Shown: positions 1,830-63,941 of the stretch, one piece after another
Position numbering within the stretch: position 1 is the stretch's first letter
Layout: each line of letters begins with the position of its first letter
Virus record (IMG/VR): IMGVR_UViG_3300037010_001702
Coordinates: 124,001-188,000 of that record
DNA length: 64,000 nt
Reading direction: 5' to 3' (one strand)
Made by a program: the position numbers and the translations under genes
The notes under the pieces: model-generated
The model's database searches: none
Told to the model about the DNA's origin: nothing
The model's input: only the letters and a program-made list of their open reading frames with translations

Positions 1830-3089
1830 TCACTCCTTCCAGTTAGCTCCGCGGGTACCAGAAGTTACTGGCCGCGTCCATGGCTCATGACCTGGGATTA
1901 CAGAAGGTGAGTCTGGAAGGTCTGGGCATGAAGCATCTGAAGCTACTGCAGCTGGAGGTCCGTTAAGCTGAATGCTTGCACCTGATTGCTTGATATCCCC
2001 GCCTGCGCTGATGTTTGTATCGCTTGAGCTAGAGATAATCATCGTAGCTTTTGCCTTTAGTTCCATGTTTGAAGCCGCTGTAACCTTGATGCTTGACTCA
2101 CTGTCAATATCAAACACCCCACAAGCTGACTGCTTGATGTCCTTGTTAGCCTTTAAGTGGAATGAACCGCTTATGCCAACCTTCATGTTACCAGTCAGAG
2201 CCTTTACATTAATGTTCTTACCTGCTTCCAGGTTGATGCTTCCATCAGCTGTAAGGTTGATGTCCTTTCCAGATCTAAGACTGATGGACTCAGCTCCGAA
2301 TACGTGAAAGTGACCATCCTCGTCAAGTTCCATCCATGCTTTGCCCCTAGCTGTAGAAACGTAGATGCGTTCATTCGTGTCGTCAAAGATAACCTGATGA
2401 CCTCTACCTGTCTTAAAGCGCATTCTAGAACCTTTAGGATCATCCTGCATGATGATGGCGTGTCTGCCTGGGGTTACAATGCAGTATGTCTGTGGATCAA
2501 GATAGCTGTCAACTGGGCTGTTTGCGTAGCCATCAGTGCCATCCTTGTTCGTTTTGTTCTGCGCTGCCTGACGTTCAACCCCACCACGTGTCTTAGCTTG
2601 AGAAGTGGTCATCTTACCGTCAAACTGTTCGCGAAGGTTGTTGTACTCTGGCTGAATTGGGATGGCTTGTCCAGCATCATCTTCTGAATCACCAAATGGT
2701 CCAGGATTACCAGCATCGTCTGCATTTCTACCAGCCGGTAGTGATCTATTGCGGTGAAGGCGAAGAGTTGACGCGAAGTAAAAGCGTACTGATGGATTCG
2801 CGTTTAAGCAGAACACAAGGACAGTAGCACCGATCTTTGGTATAGCCCACATGCCATATGCAACTTGAGATTGATTTGCTACTCCACTCGTAGGATACTC
2901 AACTGTAAATCCCGCGAATGGCGAAGCATACTCTGCCCAAGGGAGAGAATCAATGTCAAAATTTTCTCCATCAAGAGTAGGTACCCACAGCTTACACCGC
3001 CCCATTTGATCAGGGTCATCTGTTGCTACGACCTGTCCTTCCATAATGAAAGGAATGCCATCATCAATGAAGTCTAGTGGGCCGCTCAT
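1830..3089 (-). CDS. gp5: Baseplate central spike (gp5/VgrG-like, no lysozyme domain seen)
   Basis: N-terminal OB-fold motifs (GQVVATDDPDQMGRCKLWVP, LPWA, PKIGATVLV), beta-helix-like C-terminus, ends PGHEPW. Confidence 0.85.
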   Translation of the reverse strand: MSGPLDFIDDGIPFIMEGQVVATDDPDQMGRCKLWVPTLDGENFDIDSLPWAEYASPFAGFTVEYPTSGVANQSQVAYGMWAIPKIGATVLVFCLNANPSVRFYFASTLRLHRNRSLPAGRNADDAGNPGPFGDSEDDAGQAIPIQPEYNNLREQFDGKMTTSQAKTRGGVERQAAQNKTNKDGTDGYANSPVDSYLDPQTYCIVTPGRHAIIMQDDPKGSRMRFKTGRGHQVIFDDTNERIYVSTARGKAWMELDEDGHFHVFGAESISLRSGKDINLTADGSINLEAGKNINVKALTGNMKVGISGSFHLKANKDIKQSACGVFDIDSESSIKVTAASNMELKAKATMIISSSSDTNISAGGDIKQSGASIQLNGPPAAVASDASCPDLPDSPSVIPGHEPWTRPVTSGTRGANWKE

Positions 3090-5137
3090 GGTTGTTTCAT
3101 TCCTTGTCCGTAGGTTATCATGTGCATGACATGATAGAACTCCCCATTTGCAAAGTGAGTGTCAATGTCTGTAATTCTGTAGATGCCCTTGTAGAAGAAC
3201 TCATCAGCAAACATGCTAGCACCATCCTTAAAGTTACCGACGTAATCAACATTGGGAGCTCTGATGTTTATCTTAGCGTAGAGCCCAAGAACAGTTGAGT
3301 CAATGCCATTTAGAAGTGGGTCGTATTTTGTCCCATTGTAGTGCGGCTTCATCACAGCATCTAAATTCTGAATTCTCTTGTTAACAAAGGTATCAATATA
3401 GCGCTGCTTTGCCGAAGCAACACCATTCTTAATAGCTGTCTGGGTTGCACCAGTGTTGTTAACATCAACATTCTTCATCAACGAGGTAAGCTCAGTCGAG
3501 GAGATGATGGTTGTGTGAGGAGGCATTCCACCGGTCGTATTCGCATCAGCTAGCTTCATGATGATATTTGGGTTACCTCTAACTGTCATTGACAGCTTTA
3601 GCGTGCTCATGTAGTTAAGGTAGGCCACGGTTTGGTTGTATTCTTGCTTTGCGCCAAGAGCTTCCTGTGATGCTCTTGAATCAATATTTTCATCTCGATG
3701 ATCAGAGTTGTTGATGCGCTGGACCTTTGTCTTCATGCCCATGAAGATAGGATCATTAGCTTGAATATCCGTTCTATCAGTTTCAGTTGAGCTTGGTTTT
3801 TCATCTGTAGCTTGTGAATCACCCTTAATAGTAGAGACCTTCTGACCACTCGCTGCTATCTCAGCAAATCTATTTCTACCAATGTGCAGTTTTTTGTCAA
3901 GTGATACTGCCGCAACTCTTCCATCAAATTCAACTCTTAGGTCCTTGATGTGAGTGTTCTTGCCAGTGAATAGGTAGTCATACGTGATAAAGTTTACCTT
4001 GTTCTCAATGATGTTTTTTGGAGACGGCATCACATGAGGATAGACATCAAAGTGAATAGTATACGTACTGTTATCGGATGTAATGACGGGACTAATTCTG
4101 AACTGTACGCCCTCACCAGCTATTCTTTTAGCGGAGCTTGACTCCTTTAGGAACTCTGATGAAAGCTCAAGGATGCTTGAGATAGCCTTGTCAATTGTAG
4201 TGCTAGCTGAGAATGCTATCTCATAGTCATCAACTATCTTATTGACTGGCTTGTAGAAGCCACGTTTAGGAAATTTCTTCTCCGTATTTCTAGCAACTGA
4301 AGCAAGGTTAGGAAGCAGTGCTCTCCATTTTGGTGGTACGGTGATCATGTACTGCACCAGCTTGCCTGGCTTTATATTTGACACTGCACTATCAGAAACG
4401 CCATTGTACTTAAGGAAGTAGGTAAGCGATTGTTCATTTAGCTGAGCTTCAAGAGAGTCAATTAGACCACCAACTGTCTTATCACGACCCTTAGTAGTGG
4501 CTGAACGGATGTCACCCATATTGAGCTGCTGATCTGAGCTAAGACCATTACCAGCTGCAACACCCTCATGATTAATGAACGCAATGTCAAACACAGAACC
4601 GGAGCTCGTGAACTCAAATGACAGGTTTGAAATCAAAAATGGTATATTGCAGGTAACTACGTGCTCTACGTTACCATTGTAGTGATGCCCGGAGAACATT
4701 ACAGTAAGCAAGAAGAACGTTGAAGATGCCGATGCATGAAGCTTGTCGGAGAACAAGTCCATAAGGTAGTTGTAAAACGTTAACCCGGTTGAATCGTGAA
4801 TCTTCATCGATCCCTGCTTACACAGCAGCATTGGGTTCTTTGGTTCTCCAACACCAGGAAAGTGGTTGAACGTTAAGTCAGTTACAGAGTACTGGGAATA
4901 CCGTCTAGTGTCAAGGACCAAGTAGGCATCTGATCCATCAATGTTCAAGCGCTGCCCAAGCTCAACGTCATGCACTCTAGCTAAGAGTGGAGAAACATTG
5001 TTGTCATCCTTACCAATAAGAGAGCGCAGGGATTCAGTGCTTGAACCAGCTGTGATGATGAAGTGATATGAGTATGTTCTAAAGTTATCCAGTGGATTTG
5101 GATAACCTGCAGCATTTGGATCAGCAGTAACTGTCAT
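3086..5137 (-). CDS. Putative baseplate hub protein (gp27-like)
   Basis: NPLDNFRTYSYH N-terminus, MTVRGNP and FYKGIYRITDIDTHFANGEFY C-terminus; adjacent to gp5. Confidence 0.6.
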   Translation of the reverse strand: MTVTADPNAAGYPNPLDNFRTYSYHFIITAGSSTESLRSLIGKDDNNVSPLLARVHDVELGQRLNIDGSDAYLVLDTRRYSQYSVTDLTFNHFPGVGEPKNPMLLCKQGSMKIHDSTGLTFYNYLMDLFSDKLHASASSTFFLLTVMFSGHHYNGNVEHVVTCNIPFLISNLSFEFTSSGSVFDIAFINHEGVAAGNGLSSDQQLNMGDIRSATTKGRDKTVGGLIDSLEAQLNEQSLTYFLKYNGVSDSAVSNIKPGKLVQYMITVPPKWRALLPNLASVARNTEKKFPKRGFYKPVNKIVDDYEIAFSASTTIDKAISSILELSSEFLKESSSAKRIAGEGVQFRISPVITSDNSTYTIHFDVYPHVMPSPKNIIENKVNFITYDYLFTGKNTHIKDLRVEFDGRVAAVSLDKKLHIGRNRFAEIAASGQKVSTIKGDSQATDEKPSSTETDRTDIQANDPIFMGMKTKVQRINNSDHRDENIDSRASQEALGAKQEYNQTVAYLNYMSTLKLSMTVRGNPNIIMKLADANTTGGMPPHTTIISSTELTSLMKNVDVNNTGATQTAIKNGVASAKQRYIDTFVNKRIQNLDAVMKPHYNGTKYDPLLNGIDSTVLGLYAKINIRAPNVDYVGNFKDGASMFADEFFYKGIYRITDIDTHFANGEFYHVMHMITYGQGMKQP

Positions 5138-45510: not shown

Positions 45511-45565
45511 TCTAACCTACTTCTTCTGGACATTCGATAAATAAGCTATCATATTGGAGACACTA

Positions 45566-47722
45566 ATGAAACTTACACAGCAACTTCTTTCTATTTCAGA
45601 AGAATCAGCAGTAGCAAAGTCAGCTCAGCTGCAAGCAGACTTACTAAAGGCTCACCAGAAAGCTAAGAAGGTCAGTGCAGATCAAGGCGTAGTTCAATAC
45701 ATCAATAAGGATAAGAACACAGGTCGCATTTATGCATCTGATTGGTATGATGACGATGAAACTATTGCATCATACAACAATGGTAAGCTAAAAGGTGCAG
45801 TCAAAGAAGAAATCGTTCCTTTATCAAAATTAAAACCAGGAATGAAGATTCGTTGGGTAGAAGACGGTGACGAAAAAATAGGCACTATTATTGCTGATCC
45901 AAAATATAATGGTGGGATGAGAATCGGGGGTCGTTCTGTTAAAAATATTTTCGATCAAGGTTCTACAACAGAATTAACAATCATAAAAGAAGCTTCCGAA
46001 CTGAATGATGCCACCATTAATTACATGGAAGATAAGAAGAAAGAGGGTGCTAATAAGAATGCTGATCTAATGGAGGAAGATGATGAAGATTATGAAGATG
46101 ATGAAGATTATGAAGATGATGAAGATGATGAAGACCCAAATACTTTCTATGTAGCATTCTGTTATGAAGATGAGCACCGCTCATGGATTGGTAAAGTCAC
46201 TAAGACAAATGGTGGTAAGTGGCGTGAAGAGAAGTATCAAGGTAAGCCCGACTATCATTGGGGCACTTCATACATGAGCTACTTGAAGCCACAAGACGTT
46301 ATGAACTGGATTCATAAAGACTATAGCTCTCGTCGTGGTTTGGAAATTGAAGGTCCATTCTTTACTCCAGCAGAAGCTATTGAGTATGCAGAACACAATG
46401 GGGGTTCTATTAAAGAATCAGTTGGGATGACGGAAGCCCAAGCTTATACTGACTTTGAAGATTGGAAGCAAGCAGTTTTGAATTCATATCCACGACAAGC
46501 TAAGAAGATTAAATTCAAGGGTCGCATGGAAGGTGGTAAGGATACTATCTCTGCTGAAGTTCCAGGAGAAGACCGTTGCTATGGCGTGTGGAGTCAAGAC
46601 AAAGAGAAGGGTGTTGTTCTTTCTGAAGCTGCAAAGGACATGATTGAAGCTTATGGAATTCGTGGTATGAAGCGTACTCCGTGGCGGCGTACCTTCAAGA
46701 ATGAGGATGCTCTCATCAAGTGGGCCGAGAAGAATGATGCTGAAGTATATGGCCAGCGTGAAACTGATTATGCTATCGAGCTCAACAAGAACAGCAAGCA
46801 TAAGGGTGAGAAGGTTTCAGAAGCGTTTAAGGGTAGCTTTAACGACGACGATTGGTATGAAGTAAATCCAAAAACAAATGAGGTTGTTAAGTACGCTGGT
46901 GGTAAGGATAGCTACAAAACTGTTTATGGCGGTGAGCACAAGCTTGGCAATGGAAATGTTGTAATGCGTGGTATGAAGGCTAAGCACCTTAAGCCAATTG
47001 AAGAAGCATTAGACCTTTCTAACTTCTCACCCGAGATTCAGTGGCGCAAGAATAAGATTGCTGTGCTTGAAAAGCAGATTGAGAAGAAACCATCCGTCGC
47101 AAAGCAGATTAAAGATCCGAAAAGACAAATAAAGGAAAAGGAACTTGCAATGACATTTAACGAAGCTAAGGTGCCACGCAAGGGTTCCATTGCCTATAAT
47201 GCAATGATGAAACGCAAGGAAGAAGAGAATAAGCCAGAGAATATCAAGAATACTGAAAAGATTGGTAACACGAACCATATGGTCGGGACAGCTAAGGTAG
47301 TGCATGACGAAGCTAATGAAGGTATATCTCCTTACAAGCCAAATGCGCGAGTAAAGATCATCTCTGGGCCTAAGGACTGCATTGGTAAGGAAGGAACGAT
47401 TGGCGAGGTAGTTACTACCAATGGTCAAAAATCCTACACCGTTGACTACGATCATGACTACAAGTCAAGCAAACCTAACTTCGGTGCTAAGTCAGTGAGA
47501 CTTCAACCAAGGGACATCAAGCTTATTCGTGGGCCAGTAAAGGAAGCAAAAGATACTCAGCTTGAGGTTATTAACAGATCTCACATAGAGCATGGCCTTC
47601 CTAAGAAAGTTCTCTTCACTGGCAACAAGGAAGAGTGCTATGAATTCATGCGTAAGCACAAGTCTCTTCTCATGGATCTTATGGATAAAGCTACGGGAAA
47701 GTTGGTGTCCTATGTCCTATAA
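45566..47722 (+). CDS. Large modular putative internal head protein
   Basis: GATAAATA and GGAG upstream; MKLTQQLLSISEE; many (V/I/L)xE-A/S sites; KOW/SH3-like modules. Confidence 0.6.
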   Translation: MKLTQQLLSISEESAVAKSAQLQADLLKAHQKAKKVSADQGVVQYINKDKNTGRIYASDWYDDDETIASYNNGKLKGAVKEEIVPLSKLKPGMKIRWVEDGDEKIGTIIADPKYNGGMRIGGRSVKNIFDQGSTTELTIIKEASELNDATINYMEDKKKEGANKNADLMEEDDEDYEDDEDYEDDEDDEDPNTFYVAFCYEDEHRSWIGKVTKTNGGKWREEKYQGKPDYHWGTSYMSYLKPQDVMNWIHKDYSSRRGLEIEGPFFTPAEAIEYAEHNGGSIKESVGMTEAQAYTDFEDWKQAVLNSYPRQAKKIKFKGRMEGGKDTISAEVPGEDRCYGVWSQDKEKGVVLSEAAKDMIEAYGIRGMKRTPWRRTFKNEDALIKWAEKNDAEVYGQRETDYAIELNKNSKHKGEKVSEAFKGSFNDDDWYEVNPKTNEVVKYAGGKDSYKTVYGGEHKLGNGNVVMRGMKAKHLKPIEEALDLSNFSPEIQWRKNKIAVLEKQIEKKPSVAKQIKDPKRQIKEKELAMTFNEAKVPRKGSIAYNAMMKRKEEENKPENIKNTEKIGNTNHMVGTAKVVHDEANEGISPYKPNARVKIISGPKDCIGKEGTIGEVVTTNGQKSYTVDYDHDYKSSKPNFGAKSVRLQPRDIKLIRGPVKEAKDTQLEVINRSHIEHGLPKKVLFTGNKEECYEFMRKHKSLLMDLMDKATGKLVSYVL
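46075..46135 (+). repeat. 18-bp tandem repeat encoding an EDDEDY acidic tract
   Basis: GAAGATGATGAAGATTAT repeated. Confidence 0.8.
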
Positions 47723-48868: not shown

Positions 48869-49753
48869 ATGGCAGGAAATGAGCTCATTAAACGAGCATA
48901 TACGGAATCGGAATATACCCCCGAGCTTATTCAAGAGCTCGTAAGGTGTCAAAAGGACCCCGTCTACTTTATTAGAAAGTACGTCTGGCTCCAGCACCCA
49001 AAGCGCGGTAAAATTCTATTTGACTTGTATCCCTATCAAGAGGAGCTTATTCACGCGTGTGAGAACAATACCCGTGTTATCGCTCTTATCTCCCGTCAGA
49101 TGGGTAAGACGCAGACCATCTCCATGTACCTTTTGTGGTATGCGATGTTCCACCGAGATCAAACGATTGTCATCGCTTCTAAGAACAATAGCCACGCTAT
49201 GGAAATTATGGATCGTATCCGCTTCGCGTACGAAGAACTTCCGCACTGGCTAAAGGCAGGTTGTAAGTACTATAACAAGCACAACATTGAATTCGACAAT
49301 GGTTCCCGCATTAAGTCTGAAGCTACTACCGAAAAGACTGGTCGGGGATTGGCAATTTCAAAGCTTTACCTTGACGAATTGGCCTTCATCTCACCACGCG
49401 TTCAAACTGAAATGTGGCGCTCACTATCGCCAACTCTTTCAACTGGTGGTTCTGCTATCATCTCATCTACTCCTAATGGTGATACTGACCTGTTTGCTAC
49501 TCTTTGGCGTGGTGCTAAATCAGGTGAGAACAACTTCAAGCCAGTGTTCTTCCCGTGGCACCTTCACCCTGATCGCAAGGAAGAGTACATTAAGCAGATG
49601 CAGGGCGAACTTGGTCCTGTAGGTTTCCGACAGGAAGTTCTGTGTTGCTCAAGTTGGGCCTCTATAAATACTTCTATTGGTAAAACCACTTTAGAAGAAC
49701 TTTATGAATGCCTATTAGAAGGGCAAGAGCAGGTGTATCACATCAATGTTTGA
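48869..49753 (+). CDS. gp17: Terminase large subunit, N-terminal part plus 36-aa split IntN
   Basis: DPVYF, YPYQ, Walker A SRQMGKT, LYLDE, SSTPNG; then FRQEVL|CCSSWASINTSIGKTTLEELY (IntN starts at 49643). Confidence 0.93.
   Translation: MAGNELIKRAYTESEYTPELIQELVRCQKDPVYFIRKYVWLQHPKRGKILFDLYPYQEELIHACENNTRVIALISRQMGKTQTISMYLLWYAMFHRDQTIVIASKNNSHAMEIMDRIRFAYEELPHWLKAGCKYYNKHNIEFDNGSRIKSEATTEKTGRGLAISKLYLDELAFISPRVQTEMWRSLSPTLSTGGSAIISSTPNGDTDLFATLWRGAKSGENNFKPVFFPWHLHPDRKEEYIKQMQGELGPVGFRQEVLCCSSWASINTSIGKTTLEELYECLLEGQEQVYHINV
49663..49670 (+). promoter_or_regulatory. Late promoter TATAAATA inside IntN coding sequence
   Basis: Exact consensus overlapping codons S-I-N-T. Confidence 0.6.
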
Positions 49754-50238
49754 CACGAAGGATTACAACCTGACGACTGGGGGGCATTTCAAGCATGTGG
49801 TGACCCCAGGGCGCACCTCTTCCGCACTACGGAAAACTGGACTGCTTCTTCTGATAAGTATAGAAAACATTCGAAGAACATCCGAATGTTCTTGCAGCAA
49901 GAACTAAGATAATTCACGAAGCTAACTTAAAAGCAGGTGAGGATGGTTAACGGTTACAAGCGCACTGCAAAAGGACGAAATCTATGTTCTGACGCGTGTT
50001 GAAAACAAAAAGATTATAGAGTTCTATGGTAACTATTGGTATGCTTGCCTAAAAAGTACAGACCTGATGAAGTGGTAGGTTGTAAAGGCCAAACATCACG
50101 GCAAATCTGTGACGCGGATGCCACCAAGATCAAGTTGGCAGAAGATGCATGGTATCAAGTTAAGATAGTATAAGAACCGGAATACAAGAAAAACCTAAGA
50201 AGGTGGTAGATGAATGCATAGCATGGCTCAAACAATAA
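49700..50238 (+). pseudogene. Decayed Vsr-like homing endonuclease between the terL halves
   Basis: Fragments ENKKIIEFYGNYWYA / KKYRPDE..TSRQICDADATKIKLAEDAWYQVKIV*EPEYKKN / KVVDECIAWLKQ*, broken by stops and frameshifts; start approximate. Confidence 0.7.
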
Positions 50239-51353
50239 AGAACACAAAGGGCGTTAAAGTTCAAACTCCAACTGGGATGAAGAATTTTAGCGGTATGTCT
50301 AAAAGCTGGCATGAGCAAGTTGTTGAAATAGTATCAGCAACAAGAAAAATAACGTGCGGGATGAAGCATAAATTTCTTGTTGAGCCAGGTTGGGTTGATG
50401 CTGAGCACATTGAGCCGGGTATGTCATTTACGACAATTGATGGCAAGGATGATCCTATCCTTAGTGTTCAGGTTAAAAATGATCCACAGTGGTTGTATGA
50501 TCTACTTGATGTTGAGGGTGGTAGTGCCTACATAACAGAGGGGGTCATATCGCACAACTGTGAATTTATTTCATCAGACGCGCTGTTGATGGACTCACTT
50601 AAACTGTCCTACATTAAGGCCACACCTCCGGTTACCCAGAACATGGGCTTTAACTTCTGGCGAGAGTCAATAGGTGGGCGAGGTAAGACGTACTTAGTAG
50701 GTGTAGACCCGGCTACTGGTAACAGTAAGGACTTTACTGTCATTGAAGTTATCGAGTACCCGTCAATGGAGCAGGTGGCAGAATTCAGAAGCAACACCGT
50801 TCACATTCCACTGATCTATGCTAAGCTCAAGTGGTTGTTTAAGTTCCTTCATCAACCTGATCCAAACAGGGGTAGAGCTGAAATTATCTGGTCATTTGAG
50901 CGCAACGGTGTTGGTGAAGCTCTTGTTGCAATGATTCAAAATGACGACTCTATGGATGGTGGTATCTACCTTGACGGTGTTGAACTGTACAATGAGAGCT
51001 CAACCAGTCAGCGCCTTGGTTGCTACACTACTGGTAAGTCAAAGCTTCTTGCCTGTATGCAGCTTAAGAACCTTTTGGAAAAGGGAGATGGTATCAAGAT
51101 CAACTCAGAACACTTGCTATACGAGCTTCAGAACTTCGTGGCAGTTAATGGCACCTACCAAGCTAAGCAGGGTTGTACTGATGACACGATCATGGCAATG
51201 GCGGTTGTTATGAAGGTTCTCGGCAGACTCGCATCATACGATGACAAGGCAAGAAAGCTTGTGTATGAGTCAGTTGACCCGGACTCTGACAAGCTTCCGG
51301 AGGAAAACCCAGATCAATTTGGAGATGACTACGTTCCGTTTGCAATAGTCTGA
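50223..51353 (+). CDS. gp17: Split IntC (about 112 aa) plus terminase large subunit C-terminal nuclease part
   Basis: KVQTPTG.KNF.G, TCGMKHKF, LYDLLDV..YITEGVISHN|CEF; then YLVGVDPA.G..KDFT, ERNGVG, DD.IMA. Alternative start at 50214. Confidence 0.93.
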   Translation: MAQTIKNTKGVKVQTPTGMKNFSGMSKSWHEQVVEIVSATRKITCGMKHKFLVEPGWVDAEHIEPGMSFTTIDGKDDPILSVQVKNDPQWLYDLLDVEGGSAYITEGVISHNCEFISSDALLMDSLKLSYIKATPPVTQNMGFNFWRESIGGRGKTYLVGVDPATGNSKDFTVIEVIEYPSMEQVAEFRSNTVHIPLIYAKLKWLFKFLHQPDPNRGRAEIIWSFERNGVGEALVAMIQNDDSMDGGIYLDGVELYNESSTSQRLGCYTTGKSKLLACMQLKNLLEKGDGIKINSEHLLYELQNFVAVNGTYQAKQGCTDDTIMAMAVVMKVLGRLASYDDKARKLVYESVDPDSDKLPEENPDQFGDDYVPFAIV

Positions 51354-51426: not shown

Positions 51427-52770
51427 ATGTCAAATAATATCACTTGGACAAGTGGTGGTACAGAAGGTATTCTCGGGAAGTCAACAATTGTTCTTCCACC
51501 TAAGACCCTTAACCAATCTTCCACATCCCTATCCCTTACTGGCAAGGGGGTCTTCAACTATGGTGAGTATCAGCAGGAAAATTTCCTGCGCATCCTCGAA
51601 AGCTTTGCATCTGCAAACATACCAGCAAACCCAACGATAGGTCAAATTTGGTTTAACACGACTGAGAGCACTCTCTATGTCTGTGCCGACTCCCAAACCG
51701 TTCCAGCTACCATGCAGCAGTACCATATAAATGGTCGCTACGTTTGGCTTAAGGCTGGTAGCTCAACTGCAATTGGGGATATTTCTGTAGGTCTAGGCTA
51801 TATCCCAGCTCCACCCGTTGCAATCGCGTCCGATTCTCAGACAGCAATGTCAGTTGCTATTACGGGTGGCGGCACCCAAACAACTCTTCACATCAACAAG
51901 TCAGATGGTACGCACGATGGTTACCTAGCAGCTGCGGACTGGTCTCGCTTTGACACCGTGCAAAGCAAGTTTCCAACAACAAGCACTGGAACCATCATGG
52001 TGACTGATGGTGACACGATGACTGGGCCACTGATCCTCGCAGGTGATCCAACTAATTCAAATGGCGCTGCTACCAAAAATTACGTTGACAACCACAGTGT
52101 ATCGAGCATCATAGCTGGAAGTAACATTACGATTGACCACAGTCAGGGTAACGTAACTATTAGCGGTATGCCGGGAACGGTTACTAGTGTTACAGTTGGT
52201 GGTACAGCTGGCAGAATTACTGGTTCTGGAACGATTACATCATCAGGCTCAATCGCTCTTGACCTAGCAACTTCTGGAGTATCCGCTGGTTACTACGGAA
52301 TGGCAAACGTAAATGTTGACGCCTACGGTAGAATCACAAGCGCAGTTCCCGGCACTCTAACAGTTCAAGGTACTGGTGCTCTTAGTGGGGGCGGAACTAT
52401 TGGATCTGGTGGCACTGCTACCCTTGACATGGCAGTAATCCATGGCGGTGGTTACTTCACTAATGCGAGCGTTCAGCTTGACGGATATGGTAGAGTAATC
52501 GGGGCTTCTTCTGGCACAAATACAGCAACAGCTCCAAATAATAGTGGTGGTATTGGATCATGGGTTGTTCTTGGTAGCGGACCGAGTGGTGATGGCGTTC
52601 CAGCCCAACTACCCCCAGGTGGAACATGGGCTTACTTTGTGATGAATATCGTGGATGATGGTAACGTAACTGATATTGAAAGTCTCGCTGGTGTTGCGGC
52701 TGGTGGTACACTTCTGGTTGGTAGCGCTGTCTTCCACTCAGGTCAAGGATTTGCTTGGAGAATTGCATAA
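51427..52770 (+). CDS. Tail fibre protein
   Basis: GKG..NYGEYQQENFL.ILE.FA, PTIGQIWF, GDTMTGPL, AATKNYVD, VDAYGRITSA; GATAAATA at 51352. Confidence 0.8.
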   Translation: MSNNITWTSGGTEGILGKSTIVLPPKTLNQSSTSLSLTGKGVFNYGEYQQENFLRILESFASANIPANPTIGQIWFNTTESTLYVCADSQTVPATMQQYHINGRYVWLKAGSSTAIGDISVGLGYIPAPPVAIASDSQTAMSVAITGGGTQTTLHINKSDGTHDGYLAAADWSRFDTVQSKFPTTSTGTIMVTDGDTMTGPLILAGDPTNSNGAATKNYVDNHSVSSIIAGSNITIDHSQGNVTISGMPGTVTSVTVGGTAGRITGSGTITSSGSIALDLATSGVSAGYYGMANVNVDAYGRITSAVPGTLTVQGTGALSGGGTIGSGGTATLDMAVIHGGGYFTNASVQLDGYGRVIGASSGTNTATAPNNSGGIGSWVVLGSGPSGDGVPAQLPPGGTWAYFVMNIVDDGNVTDIESLAGVAAGGTLLVGSAVFHSGQGFAWRIA

Positions 52771-61161: not shown

Positions 61162-62220
61162 ATGAAATGTATTCTGCGAATAACCGATGAAGTATGGTGC
61201 CAGATATCTGGTATAATGCCTGGGCATGTAGAGACATTAGTAAAAGCATTTTCTGTTCACCCAGAAGGTTATTTTTTTATGCCTGCCTTCAAGCTTGGGA
61301 GATGGAACGGATATATCCAATTTTATTCTCCAACAGGTAAGACCTATGTCCGTCTATTAGATCAGGTTATCCCTTACTTAGAGAAGTGGGGATATGACAT
61401 TGAGCTGATAGATAATCGAAAGTACTTTGAACCTCCTGTAGTTGGCGGTAAGCTTTTGACTATTGACCCTGCGGGCATTGCTCTCACTGCTTCTGGGACT
61501 AACATAATGGGCGATGATGTTGTCGTTGGCGGAAAGGTATTCAATCTCCGCCCATACCAATTACAGTGTGTTCAGATTGCTGTAGAGAATGGAAGTGGTT
61601 TCATTATCGCAGGAACTGGTGCAGGCAAAACCTCCATCACAGGTGCTCTCTCCTACTACTATGCCAATGCCGGCTATAAAGTAATCACGATTGTTCCATC
61701 CGGTGATCTTGTAGACCAAACAGCTGAGTGGTATGAACTCCTAGGTCTAGATGTAGGCACCTATTCTGGTACAGAGAAGGACCTTGACCACATGCACATC
61801 GTTGCAACGTGGCAGGCAGTACAGTATAATCCTACAATCATGCATGACTTTCAATGTCTGATTTGGGATGAGTGTTTTTGTGGTGAGACTCCTGTATTGA
61901 TGTCTGACATGACGGAAAAGAAAATAAAAGACGTTCGGGTCGGTGATTATGTTTTATCAATGGACGCAAACGGAAATTTCGAGCCTTGTAAAGTGTTAAA
62001 AACTCACATTAATTTACCAAAATCTAAGGTAAAAATGCTTCGGCTAACGTTTGATAATGGACGTTATTTAGATGTTACCGAAAATCATATTTTCTATCTA
62101 AAAGATGGTAGAAAGGTTATGGCAAAAGATTTAACTGAGCGTGATGATATATGTGAATTCTCCTTAAATAAAATGAAAGCTCATGGAGATAAAGTGAATG
62201 AAGAAGAAAATCATAAATGA
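61162..62220 (+). CDS. uvsW: UvsW helicase N-terminal part plus split IntN (115 aa)
   Basis: LRPYQ, GTGAGKT, ATWQ, IWDE|CFCGETPVLM (IntN starts at 61873), block B VTENHIF. Confidence 0.93.
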   Translation: MKCILRITDEVWCQISGIMPGHVETLVKAFSVHPEGYFFMPAFKLGRWNGYIQFYSPTGKTYVRLLDQVIPYLEKWGYDIELIDNRKYFEPPVVGGKLLTIDPAGIALTASGTNIMGDDVVVGGKVFNLRPYQLQCVQIAVENGSGFIIAGTGAGKTSITGALSYYYANAGYKVITIVPSGDLVDQTAEWYELLGLDVGTYSGTEKDLDHMHIVATWQAVQYNPTIMHDFQCLIWDECFCGETPVLMSDMTEKKIKDVRVGDYVLSMDANGNFEPCKVLKTHINLPKSKVKMLRLTFDNGRYLDVTENHIFYLKDGRKVMAKDLTERDDICEFSLNKMKAHGDKVNEEENHK

Positions 62221-63115
62221 TTTACTAGGAGATGAATTTTTAATAGATATTAAGTTTTTACCTAGAACCGGATCAGTCAGATTGCCTTTTGATTCAGCTG
62301 TATTTTCATGTGGTCGCAAGCTTAATAAAAAAGAGTTTGGTAAATTTTATAGACTATTAATGCAAGGTCATCTTGAAGAAGCTAGGACTTTTGTAGCAGC
62401 TCCACAAGAATTTGAAAAATTAAACAAACAACGAAGGCAGATTGCTGCTTCTAAAGGTGGTAGGGCTGCCATGTTAGATCCGAAAAATTATGTTTGTAAT
62501 AAAAATGGTACGCATTGGAATAGAGGGACAGTTGGATTAGTTAAGGCATGGAACAAAGGATTAACTAAAAATACTGATGTTCGATGCAAAAACATCTCTA
62601 TCGCTAAAATGGGAGCAAAAAACCCAATGTATGGTAGACCAGTATCAGCTTTAACGCGTGAAAAGTTATCATTAAAAGCAAAGCAAAATATTGAATCAGG
62701 TAAATGGACCCCTAATACGTTTAATTCTAGAACAAGAAAGCAACTTAAATTTAGAGATAAACTTTTCAGAAGTAGCTGGGAGGCTCTTTTTTATCAAGCA
62801 TTTCCACAAGCAGAATACGAAAAGATTAGAATACCGTATTTTACTGATAAGCATCACGTTTACATTACCGATTTTAAAGTTGGTAATGTAATTTATGAAA
62901 TAAAACCTGAGAAGTACGTAAAATTAAAACAACCCATTCTTGATATAGTAGCACGCTGGTGTGTTAGCAATGGATTTGAATTTGTTATATTAACTGAATT
63001 TTCTTTAACAGAACTAATACCAAAACACACTGTTAATTTTAGTGAATTTGATGAAAATACTGAAAAACTATTAAGAGGATTATATGCATCTGTTGAAAAA
63101 AGAAGAAATAGATAA
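62198..63115 (+). mobile_element. Free-standing endonuclease (NUMOD-like plus PD-(D/E)XK) between the uvsW halves
   Basis: AWNKGL, KNPMYG, FRSSWE, YE..RIPY, Y.TDF, YEIKP; AT-rich; GGAG RBS. Confidence 0.8.
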
Positions 63116-63941
63116 GCCAGAAAAAGTTTATGATTTAACTGTTGATAAACACCACAACTATATTGTTAATGGTGCTGTTGTTTCGAATTGTCACGGTATC
63201 AAAGCTACTGTTGCGCAGAAACTTGTCAATGATAATGGTAAGCACATTGCATTCCGCTTTGGCGTAACAGGAACATTCCCTAAACCAGAGTCTGAAAAGC
63301 TTTCTCTTATTACTTCAATTGGGCCTATCCTCAAAGAGATTCCTGCTGCGTGGTTAATTGACCATGGTTATCTTGCTAAGGTTCAGATTCAGCCTGTTGA
63401 ATTGAATGAGAGTTATATCGATGAAGACTTTCCTGACTATGCTGCTGAGAAATCCTTCTTAGCTAAGAGCACTAATCGAATGGAGATCATTGCTGATTTG
63501 ATCATCTCTCAATGTGCAGCGCATGGCAATACTCTTGTCCTGGTTAACTCTATTCCATTTGGTGAAAAGTTAGCTAAGCTGATTAAGGGTGCTGTCTTTC
63601 TTTATGGCGAATCACCAAAAGACTTGCGCCGCGAACATTATGATATGTTTGAAGAGAATGATGATATAATAGTAATAGCCTCAGCAGGTATTGCTTCAAC
63701 AGGCCTCTCGATTGACCGTATTTTCTGTATGATGTTTGTAGATGCAGGTAAATCCTTCATCAAAGCTATTCAATCAGTAGGGCGCGGTCTTCGTATTGGA
63801 CATGACAAAGATTCTGTTATGGTTGTCGATGTTCACTCTAAACTAAAATGGGCAGTGAGGCACTTTAAGGAACGAGTGAAGCACTACAAAGAAGCTGGAT
63901 ACCCAATAAACAAGAAACAAACTTTGAAAGTAAAAGGTTAA
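63084..63941 (+). CDS. uvsW: Split IntC (35 aa) plus UvsW helicase C-terminal part
   Basis: VYDLTV..HNYIVNGAVVSN|CHG; RFGVTGT, STGLSI, IQSVGRGLR. Confidence 0.93.
   Translation: MHLLKKEEIDKPEKVYDLTVDKHHNYIVNGAVVSNCHGIKATVAQKLVNDNGKHIAFRFGVTGTFPKPESEKLSLITSIGPILKEIPAAWLIDHGYLAKVQIQPVELNESYIDEDFPDYAAEKSFLAKSTNRMEIIADLIISQCAAHGNTLVLVNSIPFGEKLAKLIKGAVFLYGESPKDLRREHYDMFEENDDIIVIASAGIASTGLSIDRIFCMMFVDAGKSFIKAIQSVGRGLRIGHDKDSVMVVDVHSKLKWAVRHFKERVKHYKEAGYPINKKQTLKVKG

Follow-up and report, generated by a model that had tools for sequence, protein, structure and literature searches.

The 64,000-nt window analyzed here comprises positions 124,001 to 188,000 of record IMGVR_UViG_3300037010_001702, from an uncultured jumbo phage, and in it the gene for the large terminase subunit (TerL) is fractured into two open reading frames (ORFs). 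A short N-terminal intein fragment (IntN) ends ORF1 and a long C-terminal fragment (IntC) begins ORF2, and it is highly probable that the two form an atypically split, trans-splicing intein of the AceL/GOS/Cat type, accompanied by a decayed Vsr-like homing endonuclease gene. Both intein halves are homologous to those of Cat, the intein is conserved and under purifying selection, the endonuclease gene has decayed, and inteins of this kind are distributed patchily among related TerL genes.

Anatomy of the locus and the reconstituted terminase

An earlier note, made from the letters of this DNA alone, had described TerL as two ORFs spanning 48869-51353 with a 36-aa IntN at 49643-49750 and an IntC of approximately 112 aa holding blocks B, F, and G, and our analysis bore out these coordinates and motifs. 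The features of the locus are as follows (aa, amino acids; a slash within a motif marks an extein-intein boundary).

48869-49753, plus strand: ORF1, 294 aa, the TerL ATPase half and then the 36-aa IntN
48869-49642, plus strand: N-extein, the TerL ATPase half, 258 aa, with Walker A SRQMGKT and Walker B LYLDE, ending ...GFRQEVL (Pfam Terminase_6N, 4.7e-14; T4 gp17, E 3e-37)
49643-49750, plus strand: IntN, 36 aa, CCSSWAS...VYHINV, with its stop codon at 49751-49753
49643-49717, plus strand: IntN core, residues 1-25 (Cys1, strands beta1-beta2, and helix alpha-1, ...LEELYECLL), from alignment with contiguous TerL inteins
49718-49750, plus strand: IntN tail, 11 aa, EGQEQVYHINV, where relatives stop after 25-29 aa
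49704-50235, plus strand: pseudogene of a Vsr-like (EDxHD / I-Bth0305I-type) homing endonuclease, from tblastn and DNA alignment to relative L091
50200-50206, plus strand: Shine-Dalgarno sequence AAGGTGG for ORF2, read from the sequence itself, 7 nt before the ATG at 50214 and 16 nt before the ATG at 50223
50214-51353, plus strand: ORF2, 379 aa, IntC and then the TerL nuclease half
50214-50558, plus strand: IntC, 115 aa (112 from the ATG at 50223), matching CatC (6dsl_B, E 7.5e-9) and VidaL (6vgv, E 2e-3), with AlphaFold and Foldseek in addition
50367-50369, plus strand: His52 of block B, motif TCGMKHKF, with Gly49 where Thr is usual
50499-50501, plus strand: Asp96 of block F, motif LYDLLDV
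50553-50558, plus strand: His114-Asn115 of block G, motif SHN/CEF
50559-50561, plus strand: Cys+1 (Cys116), the first C-extein residue
50559-51353, plus strand: C-extein, Cys+1 and the TerL nuclease half, 264 aa and stop (gp17 nuclease domain 3c6a, E 1e-7)

ORF1 runs on for 36 residues past ...GFRQEVL (CCSSWASINTSIGKTTLEELYECLLEGQEQVYHINV), and Cys1, at 49643-49645, follows directly on the last extein residue as set by intein-free alleles. The IntC is 115 or 112 aa long because public gene callers chose the second ATG of ORF2, three codons in, which gives the 376-aa protein P0001. The two halves are in different frames, and the 460 nt that separate them contain stops in all frames. A 9.1-kb region was recovered in three contigs of 87-239 kb from different metagenomes with 0-1 mismatches, the single mismatch falling upstream of TerL, at 47221; across the TerL locus the three contigs are identical, and the split is therefore no assembly error. 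The contiguous cis-intein ORF that the earlier note had named as its refutation is absent from all three. A megablast search with the window DNA matched no known phage.

The exteins join into a complete terminase. ORF1 matches the T4 gp17 ATPase, ORF2 residues 138-331 match the gp17 nuclease domain, and the nuclease half as a whole occupies ORF2 residues 116-379; the 258 and 264 aa together give a TerL of 522 aa. When compared with the intein-free 525-aa TerL of the Ralstonia jumbo phage RsoM2USA, ORF1 residues 1-259 align with residues 1-261 (55% identity) and ORF2 residues 114-376 with residues 259-523 (41% identity), and the two alignments meet at one Cys. Uninterrupted TerLs are also found in the uncultured relatives L015, L018, L016, L020, and L021, at 90-94% identity in the N-extein and 81-86% in the C-extein; for L015 and L018 the N-extein figure is 94%, and the C-extein is 84-86% identical to its intein-free counterparts. 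Because L015 and L018 share both the length of 522 aa and the junction GPIGFRQEVL/CEFISSDAL (...CGACAAGAAGTTTTA/TGCGAGTTCATT... in L015), the joined window exteins correspond to the product of the intein-free relatives, in agreement with the length and the QEVL-CEF junction proposed earlier. The predicted splice product would be a 522-aa TerL joined at ...RQEVL-CEFISS..., with the junction peptide QEVLCEFISSDALLMDSLK. In T4 gp17 the insertion site corresponds to FRQEHT/AAF, between the ATPase and nuclease domains.

Many relatives carry a second, diverged TerL-ATPase-like ORF (21-39% identity, Pfam Terminase_6N) directly upstream of the true TerL, namely, L008 (1093-1869), L044, L047, L049-L053, L056, L059, L060, L064-L067, L069, and L073; the window has none. 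Just upstream of TerL in the window lies a 722-aa ORF (45554-47722) with an acidic DEDYEDDEDYEDDEDDED run, and downstream lies a 447-aa ORF (51427-52770), neither with a Pfam match. The 64-kb window contains no tRNA genes.

The intein halves compared with Cat

Both halves match the chains of the Cat atypical split intein. In a single-sequence search, ORF2 residues 10-117 matched chain B (6dsl_B) at E 7.5e-9, IntC residue 10 aligning with CatC residue 13 onward, and VidaL (6vgv) was also matched, at E 2e-3. The AlphaFold model of the IntC (predicted local distance difference test score [pLDDT], 74) is all beta; its best PDB match by Foldseek is again 6dsl_B (template modeling [TM] score, 0.66/0.70), and the 15 PDB structures that it matches at E <= 0.001 are all inteins or bacterial intein-like (BIL) HINT domains, so the model points to a HINT fold. 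The single IntN peptide gave only a chance match in the PDB; a family profile was needed, since the peptide by itself has too few residues to score, and a profile of 14 sequences (IntN tails together with contiguous homologues) matched CatN (6dsl_A) at E 3.2e-5. In this alignment the IntN core is matched to CatN end to end, with the CatN terminus ...EDLYQRLA against ...EELYECLL in the window. The Cat chains bear the native extein residues EFE/ and /CE, where the window has QEVL/ and /CEF, and because CatN carries EFE and ends at the aligned helix, insertion site and split point are the same in the two. Contiguous and split relatives at the site read QEF(L/E)/C...HN/CEF, and in the contiguous inteins P0100, P0154, P0044, and P0079, IntN residues 1-25 correspond to beta1-beta2 and helix alpha-1, the break falling in the next loop. 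The matches of both the TerL and the intein parts are far beyond chance. The assignment to the AceL/GOS-TerL type, for which the earlier note had proposed an alignment with known TerL split inteins, is upheld by the matches of both halves, by the shared insertion site (Q-E-x-x/C...HN/C-E), and by the split site.

The AceL-TerL and Cat atypically split inteins are reportedly the subject of Thiel 2014 and Stevens 2018 (PDB 6DSL), and GOS-TerL is said to be the terminase locus from Lake Gatun in Dassa 2009 and to have been studied by Bachmann and Mootz in 2015. We compared AceL-TerL with the window through Cat, its consensus derivative. They share the TerL host, the insertion site, the split after helix alpha-1, class-1 Cys1 and Cys+1, and a short IntN paired with a long IntC, and they differ in several details. 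Identity between CatC and the window IntC is about 29% by Foldseek and about one-third by our own count on the alignment, and that between CatN and the IntN core is about 36%, also by our count. A five-residue insert between the first two strands of CatN is absent from the window clade, as is the block-A Asp-Thr, and the residue three positions before the block-B His, usually Thr, is Gly in the window and Ser in Cat. The IntN is 25 aa in AceL and 30 aa in Cat, with an IntC of 104 aa in both (PMC11766414), against 36 and 112-115 aa here. The position after helix alpha-1 is the "S2" split site ascribed to AceL-TerL and GOS-TerL (PMC13014065). Likened to the window by description only, GOS-TerL is also a fractured TerL locus, with fragments of 37/115 aa against 36/115, and its IntN can be shortened to 27 aa (PMC11766414), which parallels the natural 25- to 29-aa IntNs of the window clade. 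It has Ser1, however, whereas all window-clade members examined have Cys1, and a search for a Ser1 relative among N-halves returned five matches, all with Cys1. VidaL and PolB16 likewise combine a short IntN, a long IntC, and a HINT fold (TM score of 0.61 for VidaL, 6vgv), but their split point comes earlier, following strand beta-2 (the S1 site, with an IntN of 15-16 aa), and they lie in other host proteins (PMC13014065).

The architecture of an IntC followed by the C-terminal half of TerL is common to 22 clusters at 90% identity, whose IntC identities range from 47 to 100%, the closest homologue being P0002 (86%). His52, Asp96, His114, Asn115, and Cys116 (+1) are invariant in all 22 sequences, and Cys1 is invariant in every N-half examined. 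Nonsynonymous divergence (dN) is 0.11-0.26 in the IntC and 0.19-0.30 in the C-extein; because dN in the IntC is no higher than that in the essential C-extein, the intein appears to be under purifying selection. The earlier note had singled out two divergent traits. Its block B of CGMKH rather than TxxH is real, with Gly near invariant in the clade (20 of 22 sequences, with Ser in the other 2, and the His invariant), and this Gly is, as far as the comparison of sequences tells, a trait of the clade and no lesion of the window phage. The CC start, on the other hand, is no clade feature: IntN residue 2 is C, G, L, S, or Q among relatives, and redox control through a Cys1-Cys2 pair was set aside for this reason.

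The 11-aa IntN tail is probably dispensable, judging from the natural IntNs of 25, 27, and 29 aa found in relatives, and the same IntNs support the truncation to about 25 aa suggested in the earlier note. The tail EGQEQVYHINV is conserved in four other lineages (for example, EGQVQIHHISD and KRQEQIHHVDA) even though shorter IntNs exist; this conservation may be explained by the overlap of the tail, in another frame, with the start codon region of the endonuclease gene in relatives that carry one.

The spacer and the nature of the split

The 460-bp spacer between the halves, overlooked as such in the earlier note, is a decayed gene for a Vsr-like (I-Bth0305I-type) homing endonuclease. In the relatives L005, L007 (= L074), L031, and L091, an intact ORF of 345-347 aa lies between the halves and overlaps both. 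It matches PHROG 3339, "homing endonuclease," at 1e-8 to 3e-9, and its AlphaFold model (pLDDT, 87.6) has as its top PDB matches Vsr (1cw0), I-Bth0305I (3r3p; TM score, 0.68 of target), and 1vsr, which suggests a Vsr-type catalytic domain. There are about 25 full-length homologues, two of them named Vsr endonuclease by the Joint Genome Institute (JGI). Searches of PDB sequences with the endonuclease alone and with profiles of 4 and 28 sequences gave no match, and the Pfam hits DUF559, MTES_1575, and DUF7487 were all below threshold.

When the intact endonucleases of L091 and L005 were searched against the window by tblastn, six colinear pieces were found (E 1e-14 to 1e-3), and at the DNA level the spacer is colinear with the L091 gene except that it has lost about 180 and 365 nt in two deletions and has single-base indels at four or more sites. 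Of the 345 codons about 150 remain, spread over three frames in about 500 bp, and about 55% of the length has been deleted. The reading frame stops soon after its start (MNAY*), and the invariant motif EFNGDxWH reads EFYGNYWY, with the catalytic Asp and His replaced. Like the intact genes, the pseudogene overlaps the end of the IntN and the start of the IntC. No other copy of the endonuclease was found in the window by tblastn, and a group I intron or other RNA element in the spacer was ruled out, Rfam giving no match at E <= 1.

Free-standing Vsr-like endonucleases associated with "fractured genes," one of them a terminase locus, were described by Dassa et al. in 2009 (PMC2677866), and EDxHD / I-Bth0305I homing endonucleases by Taylor et al. 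in 2011 (PMC3239194). The window resembles the fractured genes of Dassa et al. in having both host halves on one strand, each with an intein half, and an endonuclease gene overlapping both (intact in the relatives), but here the endonuclease is a pseudogene with frameshifts. A free-standing endonuclease is thus found in L005, L007, L031, and L091 and only as a remnant in the window, which is the derived, endonuclease-dead state of the arrangement. Although Dassa et al. had already remarked on loci without an endonuclease (PMC2677866), the present analysis shows a graded series within one clade, from intact (L005, L007, L031, L091) through one internal stop (L006 and duplicates) and the wreck in the window to end fragments only (L013) and complete loss (L008, L014). 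Since all of these stages remain split, the gene seems to be locked into trans-splicing. At L014 (1620-1800), a 27-aa IntN is followed by TAA, 13 in-frame codons with AGGAG, and then the IntC ATG; a single stop-codon change would give a contiguous ORF across this intein.

We envisage that a mobile intein with a free-standing Vsr-like endonuclease gene once entered TerL between its ATPase and nuclease halves. The endonuclease gene would have been placed in the loop after the first helix of the intein, so that the intein would be made as two polypeptides. ORF1 and ORF2 would be co-transcribed and translated separately, ORF2 from its own Shine-Dalgarno sequence. The IntN would dock on a partly folded IntC and complete the HINT fold, and splicing would proceed through the class-1 steps: N-S acyl shift at Cys1, transesterification to Cys+1, cyclization of Asn115, and S-N shift. 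With the endonuclease since decayed, the intein would no longer be mobile, and it may have been retained because the split gene gives a whole TerL only by trans-splicing.

Several observations weigh against this account. The block-B Thr is replaced by Gly, and block A (CCSSWAS) is degenerate, having neither the hydrophobic residue usual at position 2 nor the Asp-Thr; residue 6 is Ala in the window alone and Thr in its relatives. The Pfam Intein_splicing score of the IntC (2.4e-5, 24.6 bits) lies below the curated cutoff of 35.8, as expected because the IntC is a fragment. Synonymous sites between lineages are saturated, so that dN/dS is only rough, the dN comparisons being usable. A scan for promoters and terminators found none above shuffled expectation and is silent either way. 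Splicing by the window intein, and by the other members of its clade, is something that we infer from their sequences. The departures in blocks A and B (Gly for Thr, and no Asp-Thr), together with the fact that TerL folds its ATPase and nuclease parts as separate domains and that splicing chemistry lies beyond what computation can show, would suit HINT halves that no longer splice and serve as a noncovalent dimerization module, with a two-chain TerL packaging DNA. We consider this improbable: Cys1, His52, Asp96, His114, Asn115, and Cys+1, which are needed for the chemistry only, are invariant over 22 diverged sequences, and the block A and B departures are clade-wide and partly shared by Cat, which also lacks the block-B Thr (Ser) and yet splices fast (PMC11766414).

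The clear decay of the neighboring endonuclease gene might suggest that the phage genome is defective or decaying, with TerL a pseudogene and its split mere damage. This is very unlikely: the two TerL frames are open over their full length, the Walker and nuclease domains are intact, the genome segment is unchanged in three metagenomes, and many lineages conserve the split architecture, which is under purifying selection. An assembly or sequencing artifact, or programmed read-through or frameshifting, of one contiguous cis-splicing intein ORF is effectively refuted. Other phages do have contiguous inteins at the same site (P0100, P0154, P0044, P0079, and L036), and the halves of L014 are in frame and divided by one TAA; in the window, however, the halves lie in different frames on either side of a spacer closed by stops in every frame, three independent assemblies agree, ORF2 has its own ribosome-binding site, and Rfam shows no intron or recoding element. 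Overall, trans-splicing by the ordinary class-1 route remains the most likely activity of this intein, judging from its conserved residues. It is possible, though on balance doubtful, that the window clade is in addition a functionally distinct S2-type subfamily, marked by a 25-aa IntN core, the block-B Gly, and a degenerate block A, that would splice efficiently and orthogonally to AceL/Cat.

Distribution of the intein and its implications

In a tree of concatenated exteins, the window is grouped, with good support, with five intein-free TerLs. The closest intein, that of L091 (82% identical in the IntC), is placed elsewhere on this tree, beside an intein-free TerL, and L031 and L036 have nearly identical exteins with different intein alleles at the same site. 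This patchy distribution fits horizontal homing plus loss. L031 itself has a split intein of the window type with an intact Vsr-like endonuclease, and L036 has one continuous ORF with a low-complexity insert of about 230 aa at the split position.

When the IntC was searched against 1.84 billion representatives clustered at 50% identity, there were 208 matches. The window clade collapses to one representative, and the next best match is 36-38% identical. Among the best 149 of the 208 representatives, at least 38 have a long IntC at the N terminus of a TerL C-half, and in a further 39 an N-terminal IntC is followed by an unrecognized part. The members that have been studied are AceL-TerL, GOS-TerL, and the consensus Cat (PMC11766414, PMC13014065). 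The earlier note had called the type rare; this holds for characterized inteins only, and the architecture is common in metagenomes, since at least 38 clusters at 50% identity combine an IntC with a TerL C-half.

A cultured example is Vibrio phage EniLVp02 (PP209424.1, L003, Straboviridae), which has TerL as two overlapping coding sequences (1896-4182) with the same insertion site and split type. Its first coding sequence ends FAQEHN/CLAGHTHV...LEELYQYEQEQADPDA, with an IntN of about 36 aa, and the second starts with an IntC of about 110 aa ending THN/CSF. It differs from the window in that its IntC is 26% identical, there is neither spacer nor endonuclease, and the second coding sequence is annotated as a hypothetical protein, the intein going unmentioned.

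TerL also hosts other inteins. Related TerLs have them after Walker A (query residue 80/81) and after Walker B (FIDE/C), some atypically split (e.g., P0097 and P0051), and further examples of this hot spot are L004 (2290-4365, Desulfovibrio phage 7757), L037-L040, L070, L042, L085, and L028, L085 having two inteins. Another allele occupies the window's TerL site in L022 (= L076; 3333-4325) and L085 (3326-4325), with an IntN of 31 aa (CLAGESIVTVRNKKTG...) and a block B of TPDH in L022 and TLDH in L085; in L022 an HNH-type endonuclease is fused, in frame, before the IntC, so that the C-terminal ORF consists of HNH, IntC, and the C-terminal part of TerL.

The window contains a second fractured gene, for a UvsW-like superfamily 2 (SF2) helicase (61162-63941), in which a canonically split intein interrupts motif II. 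The ORF at 61162-62220 ends ...LIWDE/CFCGETPV with an IntN of about 115 aa (Pfam Hint, 5e-11), and that at 63084-63941 begins with an IntC of about 36 aa ending ...VVSN/CHGIKA, after which comes Helicase_C, and DECH would be restored by splicing. A 305-aa ORF (62198-63115), apparently intact, lies between these halves and overlaps each of them; its matches to NUMOD3 and TnsA-like endonucleases are weak.

Very few atypically split inteins found in nature have been characterized, namely, AceL-TerL, GOS-TerL, VidaL, and PolB16 (PMC13014065), and such inteins are in demand because peptide synthesis can supply a short IntN. To these the locus described here adds another member, well supported and divergent, with about 30-35% identity to Cat and at most 38% to the nearest cluster outside its own. 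It is a candidate tool for protein semisynthesis, for which its relatives offer ready-made natural IntN truncations (25, 27, and 29 aa). The arrangement is of a known kind, its conceptual novelty is modest, and the understanding of how such elements work is unchanged. What the locus represents is the homing cycle at a late stage, with the endonuclease dead and a split intein that seems to be locked into the essential packaging enzyme of a jumbo phage. If the clade did prove to be a distinct subfamily, it would provide a new semisynthesis tool, and its natural series, from intact endonuclease through decaying to gone and, in L014, nearly re-fused, would record the fixation of a split intein in an essential phage gene.

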